The translations under genes were made by a program, and so were the position numbers. The notes beneath the pieces are model-generated. The model searched no databases. It was not told where the DNA came from and saw nothing but the letters and a program-made list of their open reading frames with translations. Shown here in pieces: positions 12,201 through 24,200 of a DNA stretch of 64,000 bases (positions within the stretch are counted from its first letter, which is position 1; each line of letters opens with the position of its first letter). This stretch comes from Eutreptiella sp. 'Long Island Sound 2002' (Eukaryota > Protista > Euglenida): contig OZ038378.1 of the NCBI GenBank assembly GCA_964036045.1, positions 164,424,001 through 164,488,000 of the forward strand. The letters are read 5' to 3'.

Positions 12201-15200
12201 AGTTTCAAATTGGAAATTCGAAATCGCGAAGCTGAGGTGTCCAGTGTCACGGCAAGGGAGCATGGGAGGGCTTTGGTGGAGGACCCTTGGCCCCCGCTGT
12301 TGCGCATCGCGGCACAGAGAGATAAGGGGGGCCGCTCCAGCCGCCCTCGGCACAGGAGAGTCCAGGACCTTTGTAGGTGCATGCCATGGGAGCGGCAACA
12401 CCGCAACAGGAAGAAGCCCAAGCAGGCCCTATCAGCGGTCGGAGCGCTGTGGCTGGGCGGTCTGTTGTCCATGGGCTTTGTCAGGGCAGCGCCGGATTCG
12501 CTGCGGGTGCCCCTCCCCCCGCCGCGCTCCTGGGACGGCCGACCCCCGGAGTAGTCAAAAAGGACAAGTCATCCGGGGGCTCCGTTGACACAACCAAAAC
12601 ACGTTCGGACCCACAGAGGGTCAGAATGTGCAGTGGCGAGAGGCCAATAGGCGCCGCCAAAGGCAAACAAACTAACACCATGACCTTGTGCGAAAGCCCC
12701 CCGCCCTCCCCCGCACAAGAAGGCGCGCGTCGGGCAGAGAGACATAGCGGGGGAGGCTCTTAGGGGCGGTACGGGGCTCTGGCTCGACAGTGTGCCATGT
12801 GCGCCCCTGCGGCCGTCGCACGGTTTCGCTTTCCTGTCCGTCCTCAGATCGCGAGCATCCGCAAGTGTCATGCGGAGGAGGTGTCAAAGCTGCAAGCGGA
12901 GCTGCAGCACTGCAAGGCCGAGTATACCTCGAAGGTGCAGGCGAAGGTGTCGTTCGCCTTCTTCATCATCCGCCTTCACAAGGGACAGGGGTGGTTGCTT
13001 TTTCCCACCCGGAAGCCAAGTCCCGGACCGCCGCCGGCGGTTGCCCCCCAACGCGACCCCCCCGACGCCCAGTGCAAAGGTCAAACCCCCCGAAACCGTC
13101 CAAACCGTCACGAAACGCTCAGCACAGGGCCGTGCACAGTACCTGAGCCCAGGGGTATGGAACACACAGGGAGGCCGAGAGGCACCGCCAAAGGCCAACA
13201 AACCAACACCGAGGCCCGAGAGCTGTTGTAAGACGGGGTGTCTTAGATTCGGAGGCGTCTTACATCCGTCTTACATCCGTCTTACATCCGTCTTACATCC
13301 GTCTTACATGCGTCTTACATGCGTCTTACATCCGTCTTAGATTATGTAAGACGGGGCGTCTTAGAAAATCTAAGACGGGGCGTCTTAGAAAATCTAAGAC
13401 GGGGCGTCTTAGATAATCTAAGACGGGGCATCTTAGATGATCTAAGACGGGGCGTCTTAGAAACCTAAGACGGGGCGTCTTAGAAAATCTAAGACGGGGC
13501 GTCTTAGATTATCTAAGACGGGGCCTCTTATATTAATAAGAACGGGGTGTCTTAGAGTAAGTACAGGTGCAGTTTTTTTTTCATTCAAAAAGCTGATGGA
13601 GTGGACAAGATCATAATACATATGTAATAACATATGACATAATACAAATGTAGGAAACAAACCACAAACTACCGAACACCCTACCTGCGCCGGGTGAACG
13701 CTGCCAGCGGACCGTTTGGTGGGGAAGAGGGCCTTCGGCCCCTACCCTAATATTGGCACTTCGCGTCTACAACATGCCCACGGTGTCTACAATTAGCAGG
13801 CCGCGTTTACTTGGGGCAGACAGTGTCTACAGACCAGAACACCATGCCTGTGTGTGCGGGTGAACGCTGCCAGCGGACCGTTTGGTGGGGAAGAGGGCCT
13901 TCGGCCCCCTTCCCAAATATTGGCACTTCGCGTCTACAACATGCCCACGGTGTCTACAATTAGCAAGCCGCGTCTACTTGGGGCAGGCAGTGTCTACAGA
14001 CCACAGAACACCATGCCCGTGCGCGCGGGTGAACGCTCCAGCGGACCGTTTGGTGGGGAAGGGGGCCTTTGGCCCCCTTCCCTAATATTGGCACTTCGCG
14101 TCTACAACATGCCCACGGTGTCTACAATTAGCAGGCCGCGTCTACTTGGGGCAGACACTTGGGGCAGACAGTGTCTACAAACTGTAGATGGGATGCCCCC
14201 CAAAACACACTCAATACCCAAATAGGGTGGAAAACACCTAAATGCTGCTCAAAACATGCTTTACACAGCTTGGATGGTCATTGTGAGTGGCCGGGATATC
14301 AAAAAAATCAGTTTCGGAAATTTCGTTTTTTCACCTGTATAGGGTGAGAAACTACATAAGCAGGTTGTGTACTAGTCCCTTGGGACCCCCCCCCCCCGAC
14401 CCCACCCAATACAACTGCAGGTGGGTGTTGTTGTTTGATTCTGCACCCATTTTGCAACCAATCATTTGGGGTAACAACCAAGCAGTTTGGGCATAGATGC
14501 ATATGGCACTGAAGCATCGTCTCCCTTATGGTGGCAGTAGCAGGCATACTCTGAGTATGTCCCGGGTACCATCCGATTTCAGGGGTTAAGCCTCGTTTGT
14601 CCTATGGGGTACTGAGGTGGGAGGCCCCCAGGCCCAATTGTTGAAGCTGGGTGTTGTTGTTTAATTCTGCACCCATTTTGCAGGGAGTAACAACCAAGCA
14701 GTTTGGGCATAGATGCATATGGCACTGAAGCATCGTCTCCCTTCTGATGGCAGTAGCAGCCATACTCTGAGGATGTCCCGTGGTATCATCCGATTTTAGA
14801 GATTAAGCCTCGTTTGCCCTGTAGGGTACTGAGGTGGGAGACCCCTAGGCCCAATTGTTAGAGCTGGGTGTTGTTGTTGAATTCTGCACCCATTTTGCAA
14901 CAAATCATTTTGGAGTAACAACACAGCAGTTTGGGCATAGATGCATATGGCAATCAAGCATCCTGTCCCTAATGTGTGAGACACAAAAAGGCAGCAAAGC
15001 ACCACTGACGAACAGAAATCCGGTCCATGCCAAATGTTCTGCCATTGCTTCGGGGCTGCCAAGTTGGCATGGTTCATTTACCGCCGCCTCCGAGGTGGTG
15101 GCTTAGGCACTGAACTTTGGTCAAATGCCACGGAGTACAAGCAATCCGCAAAGCAACGTGCATCCCACTCCTCCACCGTAATGTTGTTCTGAACAAGAAT

Positions 15201-21200: not shown

Positions 21201-24200
21201 CATCAGTGCGGCAAAGAGAGATTGCTGTTTCGCAGAAACAAACCAGAGCCGCCATAGGCATTGTTGACCCCTCGGGTTTCCATCCCGGCGCCAACCCTGG
21301 TTTGCTTCTAGGCTGAAAATTGCCGCGCTAAAATAGCAGTAAACAACAGTAAACAAAACATTTGCTGCTACACCTACCTATCTTTACTAGTGCTGCTCTG
21401 TCACTATACCTCGTCAACGTTCTGTACCCCGTCACCCAGGTCTCCCAGCTCGTTGTCTGTGCACCTGATGAGCGGTGCTATGAGTTTTGTTGTCCTGTTC
21501 AGTAGTGGCCGCACGACACCACGACGCCCCGCTCACCCAACCGCCACGAGAGACGGAGTAAGGGTGGATCCCCTTTGGAATCTGCCATAGGCCTTTGCCT
21601 GGGGTCTGGGGGGTGTGCTTTCGCGACCACCTACAGGGAGAGCCCACGCTCAACCCCTGCAAGCGCCGTGGCCGGACCATGATTGTGAAGCCACACGGGG
21701 ACCACAAGGCCCACGGGGGCTGTTGCCTATGTGGGGGGATGAGCCGACCGTCCTTGGTTTGGTGGATTGGGCTGTTTTTCCCTCCCAGCCGAAACCCTTG
21801 CCCGGCAGGTTTCTGCTTTTTACCATACCGGCAACTCGTCAGCACCACGTGGCACCGGCGAGTTGCATCCATTCCTCAAACACGATAGGCCGCATACCCG
21901 CCACCCAGTGGCTGGGCCCCAGGTCTGCCGCCCAGGGTTGGGAGGGGAGAGCATATCCTACTTACCACAAACCAATATCTTGTTTGACTGTCACCTGCCA
22001 CCCTGTGGCTAGGCCCCAGGTCGCTTGCCCGGTTTTTGAAAGGGAGAGCACGATATCCTACTTACCACAAAGCAATATCTTGCTTGACAGTCACCTGCCA
22101 CCCTGTGGCTAGGCCCCAGGTCGCTTGCCCGGTTTTTGGAAGGGAGAGTATTTTTGTTAACCCAACCTTATTTGCGTTTGTTTTCATACTGCGTCCGATT
22201 TTCACTTTCGCTGCAATAAACTACTGCTGATCACATAAACGGTTCGCTCTCGCCAAACGAAACCTACAAGAGAAAAACAGGCATACCTTCCCTAACCTTC
22301 CCTGTTTGCAACCACCTTCGCAGAAGAGGGCCCGGTTAAGGATTTGGATTGGATTGGATTGGATTGGATGGGATTGGATTGGATGGGATTGGATTGGATG
22401 GGTTGGATTGGATTGGATTGGATGGGATTGGATTGGATGGGATTGGATTGGATGGGATTGGATTGGGCGCAACGTGCAGAATGGGGCATGAGACACGGAA
22501 GAGGGGGACAACAAGCAGTGGGGCAAACTCTCCCACGATTCTGGCATTCTTGCAAAAAGGGGGGCAGCAGAAAAAAATATTTCATTTTTACGTTTTTTTT
22601 TCCGGGAACCCATTTTTGCGTAAGGCATGAAGCCAATAATTAATTTTTTACACATTTTTTTTGCGGACAATAACACCTTGTGCCGGGAATTAATTATTTA
22701 CGCAAATCTTTAGGATTTGCATGGTATTAGATCTATATGACCAACCCGTCCTACACACCTCTCTTTTTCATATTTTTCATTCTATTACTATTGGATTATT
22801 CGTTCAATCCATCACACGCTGCAATACACATTCCAAGTACCAGAAGCCCTGTCTTAGAAAATCTAAGACGGGGCGTCTTAGATAATCTAAGACGCCCCGT
22901 CTTAGATAATCTAAGACGGGGCATCTTACATGCGTCTTACATCCGTCTTACATGCGTCTTACATCCGTCTTACATCCGTCTTACATGCGTCTTACATGCG
23001 TCTTACATGTGTCTTAGATTTTCTAAGACGCCCCGTCTTACAACAGTTATGGAGGCCCCGTGCCAAACCCCCGCGCCCCCCATGACCGGGGGAGGCCGAG
23101 CGTGAGGCGTGTAGCTCAAAGGGGCCTGCAACACCGAGCGCACCCCAACACCGGCACGACCCAACGTGGCCCAAGGGATGTGCGCCACGACCCGGACTGA
23201 GCCCATGAAGTGGCATCGCAGGCGGTAAAGCCCGGGACCCGAGACCGCCTCACCGCTTTCCGCCCGATTTCGGGGAGGCACGGGAGCAGCACCGCTGGGC
23301 GTACTGGCACAGCCCCCGCCACGACGCACTCGAGTGGGACGGAGGTGGCGATGAAGGCCGTGTGAGGGCAGGCGCGGCTGGGGCTTCGTCCGTGAGGGAT
23401 CGGCTCGTCCGGACCGGCGATGAGAGTCGTGTCCAACAACGCACAGCCTCGAGGCACGCCTCCGTCTTCATGGTGGCCCCCACCCCCTCGCCCCCGAATT
23501 CTGCCAGACAACAGCGGCTGAGGTGTGTGTGGCAGGACTGGGTCCCCCCCTCCCCTCCAACACTGGAAGCCACATCCAACACGAATGGAACGGAGATGGC
23601 GATGAAGGCCGTGTGCTGGCAGGCGCGGCCGGTGGTGTCATGGTGTCATGGTGTCTTCTGCCGGGTCCCGCCCCCGCAGGAGCGGTTGCCTGTGGCCCCA
23701 GCCAGGCCCGAGCAGCACAATACCGCAGCAAGTGCAATGCCCTGTCGCGCAGCGCTCGTGCCCCCCCCCCCCCCCCTCAGTCAGGCGCGGCCGGAGCTGA
23801 GTGGCGGGTCCACACGTGACCTTTTGAGCCCCCCCTCCCGCCTCCTCACGCTGCGGGTGTTGGGGTCCGCGATGGGGGTCCGGAGCGGGGGCCCCGCACC
23901 CCCATGCCCACGGTACGCCCCATCAGTGCAACGGGGCTAATGCCGCGGGGCTTTGTGTGGGCTGCTGCGTTTCAGATCCGTCGAAGTCCCGTGCCCCACC
24001 GTCCCCCTCGTCGACGCGGTGCGTGCGCGCCCACCGGCCGCCCCCCGTCCCGAGCGACGCCCCTGTGCTCAGGTGGAGGAGCAGACGAAGCACCTGAAGG
24101 ACACGGTCCAGCGGCTTGAGGCCAACAAGAAGCAGGCGGAAGGTCGATTGAAACAGGAAATCCAGAAAAGGTGTGTGTCTGTGCGTGTGTTGGGGGGGGG

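Follow-up and report, generated by a model that had tools for sequence, protein, structure and literature searches.

A probable deletion derivative of a divergent KDZ transposon with hexamer-array ends in a euglenid genome

The window analyzed here is a stretch of 64,000 nucleotides from contig OZ038378.1 of the assembly GCA_964036045.1 (Eutreptiella sp. 'Long Island Sound 2002', positions 164,424,001 to 164,488,000). At 13218-23051 it carries a 9,834-bp element with a gene for a KDZ-type transposase, which is a real, recently mobile cut-and-paste transposon. With a probability of about 0.8, we read it as a deletion derivative from a divergent euglenid KDZ lineage, whose ends would be recognized through arrays of a short motif and which was most likely mobilized in trans. 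KDZ elements are among the least studied eukaryotic cut-and-paste transposons, and this family supplies complete, very young copies with defined tips and a clean 7-bp target duplication.

Ends, target-site duplication and copies of the element

The window protein matched two clusters, both from one ENA assembly, and 11 loci were retrieved through cluster members and distant matches. Nine family copies, the window copy and eight more from a single assembly, were found each at a different locus and with a common end plan. Identity among the full-length copies is 98.7-99.1%, and that between the window copy and the copy at locus L002 is 99%, which points to recent activity. Contigs from sequencing runs of the same organism (Logan contigs) cross from unique flank into the element end with zero differences. 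In the organism's own runs, which are of unknown kind and DNA-like, word depth over the transposase open reading frame (ORF) is about 13 times that of the flank, which would fit about a dozen copies if the runs are DNA.

The ends of the element were set by homology with the other copies and by the 7-bp duplication. Homology begins at about 13217-13219 and ends at 23047-23053, and direct reading of the flanks showed the exact 7-bp target-site duplication (TSD) GAGGCCC. The first-pass annotation, made from the sequence without database searches, had recognized the element but placed its ends at 13227 and 23042; the true ends each lie 9 bp farther out. Its description of ends built from TAAGAC/GTCTTA in 11-bp direct and 24-bp palindromic units agrees with Tandem Repeats Finder (TRF) and direct reading. 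Reading inward, each end opens with a 5-nt tip and a 16-bp inverted repeat, behind which come first the 11-bp direct array and then the 24-bp palindromic one; all of the modules are based on this hexamer. The features of the ends and the gene are listed below.

13211-13217, no strand: left copy of the TSD, GAGGCCC (direct reading; the 7-mer recurs at 23052-58).
13218-13238, no strand: left terminus (3' relative to the gene), with tip GAGAG and the 16-bp inverted repeat CTGTTGTAAGACGGGG (the point from which L001 and L002 are homologous).
13256-13339, plus strand: 11-bp direct array CGTCTTACATS, 7.6 copies with 97% matches (TRF, direct reading).
13333-13556, no strand: 24-bp palindromic array GTCTTAG-N5-CTAAGAC-GGGGC, about 9 units (9.4 copies by TRF; direct reading).
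15078-17775, minus strand: retained transposase coding sequence from the LYGYD motif to the stop, with a Cys-rich region, the KDZ/RNase H-like core and a conserved C-terminal domain.
22851-22928, no strand: 24-bp palindromic array, 3.2 units (TRF).
22924-23016, plus strand: 11-bp direct array GTCTTACATSC, 8.5 copies, on the same strand as the left array (TRF, direct reading).
23031-23051, no strand: right terminus, the 5' end in gene orientation, with CCCCGTCTTACAACAG and tip TTATG (direct reading, copy comparison).
23052-23058, no strand: right copy of the TSD, GAGGCCC (direct reading).

In gene orientation, all copies follow the same plan. On the 5' side the flank leads into the 7-bp duplication, the tip CAGTA (variants TAGTA, CATAA and CATAG) and CTGTTGTAAGACGGGG; on the 3' side CCCCGTCTTACAACAG is followed by the tip CCCTC (variants CTCTC and CTCTT), the identical 7 bp and the flank. 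Neither 5-nt tip is an inverted copy of the other, and the 16-bp inverted repeat lies immediately internal to them.

An exact 7-bp duplication was found in all nine informative insertions, namely the window, L001, L003, L004, L005, L006, L011 and L012 together with L007, which belongs to a sister family described below. These show that integration duplicates 7 bp of the target. Within the family itself, eight of the nine copies bear the duplication, the exception being L002. A Zisupton-like duplication of 8 bp was also considered and rejected, as it fits just five of the nine insertions, with a mismatched eighth base in the window, L006, L011 and L012. In all four of these failures the base adjacent to the right end is still C, and this C is therefore part of the element.

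Two loci showed rearranged surroundings. The L002 copy lies between two 99.6% identical copies of a 3.4-kb flank (L002 1283-4664 and 14317-17689), and the second flank copy ends in GCATTC-ATAACT-AGAG-TAGTC, with 6 nt of one element tip and 4 nt resembling the other tip. This arrangement could be a product of alternative transposition or of duplication; an excision footprint at the L002 X/B junction was rejected, since the retained letters lack the expected polarity. At L012 16961-17030, the 3' tip and the TSD TCAGGGA are followed by TGCTG|CAGCA and then by the mirrored TSD and tip, TCCCTGA-GAGAG-CTGTTGTAAGAC. Together these make up a perfect palindrome, each arm being about 29 nt long, which could stem from foldback repair or be an artefact of the assembly.

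The transposase and its superfamily

The transposase gene of the window copy is a 984-codon ORF on the minus strand (15078-18032), with a core at about residues 403-570 that includes D476, D499-R-F-H502, H506, C508, N523-S-S and E528. Pfam returned zero families for this ORF at E<=1 and for the full-length family protein P0002 at E<=0.1, so that the KDZ profile match named as a check in the first-pass annotation was found with neither, and the assignment to KDZ rests on other evidence. The paralogue P0018 scored 13.5 bits against the KDZ model PF18758 (E 0.06), below the cut-off.

Transitive homology, profile-profile homology and fold all uphold the earlier proposal of a KDZ-superfamily transposon. 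A phmmer search with the window protein, run as a full pass over 1.84 billion (1.84e9) representatives, gave 48 matches, eight of which independently pass PF18758 (31-54 bits against a cut-off of 26.6; best 2.1e-14). Using hhalign, a profile of the window core and the Pfam-negative matches (A3) was aligned to a profile of the eight Pfam-positive matches (A4) with a probability of 99.95 and an E-value of 6e-38 over 152 columns. We sought the signature patterns YDxxC ([FY]DxAC), DRFHxxxHxxxC (DRFHxxxHxC) and NSxxxEQ, and the window protein carries FDYAC (D476), LDRFHGTVHKC (D499...C508) and NSSAAEQ (E528). These three motifs are invariant between the window family and P0018 and align to columns that are invariant among the Pfam-positive matches. 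Alignment A1, used in a word-indexed profile search, found nothing beyond the family itself.

The fold of the core was examined in an AlphaFold (AF2) model of ORF residues 391-711, in which the core (model residues 10-185) has a predicted local distance difference test score of 74-94 and its strands and helices follow one another as in an RNase H-like domain. The models closest to it in the ESM Atlas belong to KDZ and CxC clusters, with a template modelling score by row of 0.66 and a root-mean-square deviation of 2.3 Å over 157 residues. In an exhaustive alignment to solved chains (VIA-align), the top 31 were nearly all retroviral integrase or DDE transposase cores (Z 8.7-5.7), the exceptions among the top rows being two Prp8 RNase H-like domains at ranks 28 and 33. 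Foldseek found no significant match of the modelled core in the PDB, and no solved KDZ structure surfaced in the fold searches of the core.

The N-terminus of the full-length protein provides a further, indirect link, as residues 68-273 of P0002 align to residues 51-254 of P0025 (E 1e-28), which passes the CxC5 model at residues 13-116. To our knowledge, the CxC5 cysteine cluster occurs only in KDZ transposases. On the basis of these sequence comparisons and the modelled fold, we conclude that the enzyme is a divergent KDZ-superfamily transposase.

The lack of a direct Pfam KDZ match and the non-significant Foldseek result would also fit an enzyme from another DDE superfamily (CMC/Plavaka, hAT or an unnamed one), with a KDZ likeness that is convergent or reflects merely a shared RNase H fold. 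We consider this highly improbable in view of the profile-profile E-value of 6e-38 to proteins that pass the Pfam KDZ model, with the signature motifs aligned, and of the CxC5 link through P0025. Pfam gave no match to hAT or any other transposase family. The CMCT clade (EnSpm, Plavaka and Transib) has a TSD of 2-5 bp (PMC12730594); the 7-bp TSD of the window family falls outside this range and matches that of Kyakuja (PMC12730594), its termini differ from those of the clade, and no Pfam transposase match of that clade was obtained.

Before Kojima 2025, only the ends of Zisupton had been well characterized (PMC12730594). Kyakuja elements, such as Kyakuja-1_LB and Kyakuja-2_LB of Laccaria bicolor, have 7-bp duplications and CA..TG termini without terminal inverted repeats, and Zisupton and Dileera have 8-bp duplications (Kojima 2025, PMC12730594). 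The window family resembles Kyakuja in its KDZ-type core, its 7-bp TSD, the 5'-CA at one tip and outermost tips that are not mutual inverted repeats. It differs in its other tip, which ends in ...CYCTC and not in ...TG, so that the tips (CAGTA/CATAA ... CCCTC/CTCTC) show one half of the CA..TG pattern. It also differs in having the 16-bp inverted repeat 5 nt inside the tips and large hexamer arrays, in lacking TET/JBP or another second gene recognizable by Pfam, in a protein that the Pfam KDZ model misses, and in its host, which is probably a euglenid and not a fungus. The Pfam search for a second gene covered the window ORF, P0002, the N-terminal thirds, eight ORFs in the 5-kb upstream region and one downstream ORF.

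With Zisupton and Dileera the family shares the superfamily, by core homology, as well as large elements, long transposases and, apparently, N-terminal cysteine clusters. An 8-bp duplication, however, fits five of nine window-family insertions as against nine of nine for 7 bp, and the window-family ORF is intronless, whereas Zisupton genes are multi-exonic (PMC9297572). The first-pass annotation knew of neither KDZ elements with hexamer-array ends nor a euglenid KDZ member, and a literature search of incomplete coverage likewise yielded neither. The truncation of the window copy, the tally of 7-bp against 8-bp duplications, the co-variation of motif and enzyme and the polarity rule of the arrays are new here. 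The assignment would extend the range of KDZ elements to Euglenozoa, where the Pfam model is blind and standard annotation will therefore miss such elements.

Hexamer arrays and the sister family

GTCTTA/TAAGAC occurs 50 times in the window, compared with 11.5 expected and a maximum of 22 in 100 shuffles, and 41 of the 50 sites fall within 13229-13554 and 22851-23040. Inward from the gene-orientation 5' end, all nine family copies present the tip, an inverted-repeat hexamer pair, 7-11 direct units spaced 11 bp apart and 3-9 head-to-head pairs with a period of 24 bp. A spacing of 11 bp corresponds to about one helical turn, and the 24-bp unit GTCTTAG-N5-CTAAGAC is a palindrome with arms of 7-9 bp. 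The 3' end mirrors the same modules with the direct units unchanged in strand, so that only the module order inverts. Unit numbers differ among copies and the architecture is constant. When the units of all copies were sliced by register, 150 of 150 had an unchanged TAAGAC, compared with a conservation of just 65-71% at one spacer position. As anticipated from the window copy, the arrays are present in every other transposase copy examined. Together, these sequence features suggest that the arrays are candidate landing sites of the transposase.

Comparison with a sister family provides the strongest argument for such a function. The paralogue P0018, which is 32-35% identical to the window-family enzyme over its whole length, resides at L007 in a 7.4-kb element. 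The tips of this element, CACTACTGTCG ... CGACAGCACTC, are related to those of the window family, a 7-bp duplication flanks it, and it has the 168-bp internal repeat in common with the window copy. The terminal 700 bp at L007 contain 81 GTCGTA and 0 GTCTTA, whereas the window-family ends contain 41-55 GTCTTA and 0 GTCGTA. The one-base change in the word thus accompanies a change of enzyme, as would be expected if the arrays are the landing sites of the enzyme. The short units of the sister family are inverted between the two ends, and the same-polarity layout is peculiar to the window family. The window itself holds a small member of the sister family:

44263-45121, no strand: non-autonomous sister-family element of 859 bp, with L007-like termini, GTCGTAC/GTACGAC arrays and one 168-bp unit.

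No TSD is visible at this element, the flanking 7-mers being CGCTGCG and GGAGCAG.

Alternatively, replication slippage or gene conversion at the ends could have produced the arrays as satellite-like by-products with no role in transposition, which would depend on the tips and the 16-bp inverted repeat only. The variable numbers of direct units and palindromic pairs, the 11-bp polarity that is equal at both ends and not predicted by a strict binding geometry, and the other tandem repeats that fill the element are in keeping with this explanation. By-products would not, however, be expected to keep the order of tip, inverted repeat, 11-bp and 24-bp arrays in nine copies and both subfamilies, nor to hold the hexamer invariant next to a variable spacer. 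The sister family repeats the same plan with a core that differs by one base and no cross-occurrence, and its 859-bp non-autonomous relative consists of nearly nothing except arrays. We therefore regard the by-product explanation as unlikely and favor arrays that serve as transposase landing sites.

Arrays of this kind have functional parallels in maize. The En/Spm (CACTA) and Ac/Ds elements carry many short transposase-binding motifs, direct and inverted, within a few hundred bp inside short terminal repeats, and their internally deleted copies are mobilized in trans. En/Spm belongs to CMC with a 3-bp TSD and Ac/Ds to hAT with an 8-bp TSD, and their motifs are irregularly spaced. By analogy, the window-family ends would be functionally similar; the superfamilies are unrelated, and the window arrays are strictly phased at 11 bp and 24 bp.

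Dozens of invariant hexamers, set in two fixed geometries, give this family an explicit candidate code for binding. The family also comes with a natural specificity swap, in which the motif of the sister family differs by one base alongside its enzyme, and with a natural pair of autonomous and non-autonomous elements. With these copies, code, swap and pair, end recognition by a KDZ enzyme becomes directly testable. A more tentative proposal, to which we give slightly less than even odds, is that euglenids hold a deep KDZ lineage of their own with phased end arrays of a 7-nt word, and that GTCTTAC and GTCGTAC diverged along with the cysteine-cluster DNA-binding domains. If so, the two families would form a readable natural pair for KDZ end recognition, and the same-polarity arrays would imply either that synapsis does not depend on orientation or that orientation tells left from right.

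A third family, represented by P0021 at L008, was set aside, as its KDZ-like gene is fragmentary and the element ends are not definable. At this locus, a 52-bp palindromic unit is repeated 33 times (L008 1-1742), and GGGTAC and GTACCC arrays face each other about 1 kb apart (L008 12389-12596 and 13282-13350). The facing arrays could be the ends of another array-ended element.

Truncation, mobilization and genomic context

The transposase of the window copy had been described as full-length-looking, which the comparison with other copies does not bear out. The window copy is without the first 79 codons, a 325-bp coding segment and the promoter region, and does not encode the complete transposase of its family, which five copies encode as a protein of 1059-1086 residues. 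Codons 1-79 are absent from the ORFs of both the window and L002 copies; they make up about the first half of the CxC5-like cysteine module and hold CxxC pairs kept even in the 32-35% identical P0018. They were removed by a 1.6-kb deletion that also took the upstream region, about 1.4 kb upstream of the start being missing from both copies. The 325-bp segment is likewise absent from both, between 15587 and 15594 in window coordinates. At 17775, contig ends in runs X4 and X6 lead on into the full-length form, and the high-depth read contigs of runs X3, X4 and X6 (about 13 times flank depth) carry the undeleted form. The remaining internal features are as follows.

13686-14157, no strand: 168-bp internal tandem repeat, 2.8 copies, common to the sister family (L007 13768-14782; window 44485-44652) (TRF, copy comparison).
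14471-14899, no strand: 217-bp tandem repeat, 2 copies, downstream of the ORF (TRF).
17776-18032, minus strand: false N-terminus, a read-through of the (AAAAGCGCCAGA)n repeat ('FWRFFWR') at the 1.6-kb deletion junction.
19813-21083, no strand: about 1.27 kb in place of 232 bp in full-length copies, containing a small nested element (copy comparison).
21896-22148, no strand: 100-bp tandem repeat, 2.6 copies, followed by a (TTGGA)n run at 22344-22466 (TRF).

The extra DNA of about 1 kb with the nested element is common to the window and L002 copies. The nested element measures about 560 bp and has perfect 18-bp inverted repeats, CCCCCCTTGCGCAAGCAC, at 20175-20192 and 20718-20735.

The deleted form is present at at least two loci, the window and L002, and must therefore have moved after the deletions arose. 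Since both ends are intact while the promoter region, the 79 codons and the 325-bp segment are gone, mobilization in trans by full-length relatives is the most likely route, and the deleted form was probably mobilized in this way. We also considered that the window copy is autonomous, a shorter protein from an internal Met (compare the 881-residue P0001) being sufficient and the N-terminus and a 110-residue linker dispensable. Its ORF is open for 984 codons with intact conserved core motifs and C-terminal domain, and the deleted form has spread to two or more loci, probably including L012 as judged from its tips. Autonomy nevertheless appears improbable, because the losses include the region upstream of the start and the CxxC pairs conserved in P0018 within the CxC5-like module, the ORF now opens with translated tandem-repeat sequence, and the contigs at about 13 times flank depth carry the undeleted form.

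The full-length element measures 10.4-12.2 kb and encodes the 1059-1086-residue protein, in which a CxC5-like cysteine cluster at the N-terminus is followed by the RNase H-like KDZ core and by a C-terminal domain that is conserved. In the mechanism that we favor, the enzyme would locate the element through dozens of CGTCTTA sites in the subterminal 300-450 bp, placed 11 bp apart or in head-to-head pairs, and would then make its cuts at the tips, beyond the 16-bp inverted repeat. Having kept both ends, the window copy would have been moved in trans by such full-length relatives.

Several observations weigh against this reading. Besides the silence of Pfam on the window ORF and P0002, the CxC models of Pfam gave no direct match on the N-termini of P0002 or P0018, and an attempt to assign the catalytic triad gave no result, with the first core strand showing no obvious conserved acidic residue. 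The polarity of the 11-bp arrays does not change from one end to the other, unlike what a simple symmetric binding model would give, and comparison of the flanks at L002 showed no TSD at the ends of that copy. The ratio of nonsynonymous to synonymous substitution rates among copies is 0.4-1.4, indicating weak constraint, as expected if the copies mostly drift after insertion. Two short contigs of the estuary metatranscriptome run X1 are the only signal for the transposase from an RNA library.

These two contigs, of 271 nt and 149 nt, lie on the transposase ORF at window positions 15957-16227 and 17019-17167, with 2 and 1 differences, respectively. They may hint that the organism or a close relative was present in the estuary and that the transposase gene is transcribed, or they may represent DNA carry-over.

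The first-pass annotation also placed the element within an intron of a host gene. The KDZ element lies antisense to exon-like segments on the plus strand at 12848-12946 and 24073-24170, which are AG/GT-bounded, in frame and heptad-rich (coiled-coil), and a third such segment starts at 24290. From these sequence features it is plausible that the element is intronic and that the host splices 12946 to 24073 across it. Pfam gave no match in ten flanking ORFs, and no spliced reads across the element were seen in the available DNA-like runs (Logan contigs), one contig of which passes unbroken from the flank over the proposed splice donor into the element. For genome annotation, 10-kb elements in apparent introns and at duplication junctions are to be reckoned with in this organism.

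A repeat of about 95 bp lies at window 12560-12652. The KDZ element has inserted exactly where a further, partial copy of this repeat ends, the tail of that copy being at 13180-13217. Contig word depth on this repeat is near 4e5 in runs X3 and X4, compared with about 40 on unique flank, which makes it extremely abundant in the genome.

Scans of the window with Rfam and for tRNA genes were empty. The segment at 51373-51400, CTTTCTTAGTGTCTATTTTTTTTTCG, resembles what we take to be the Euglena spliced leader, with 3 mismatches to the 23-mer where none would be expected by chance. It is followed by CTTGGG and not by GT, so that it looks like the 5' end of a retro-copied mRNA and not like a spliced-leader RNA gene. 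The resemblance lends mild support to a euglenid origin of the DNA. Finally, large short-period satellite blocks with a strong strand skew occupy window 32800-35990, the interval 35001-36000 having a GC skew of -0.70 and an AT skew of 0.88.

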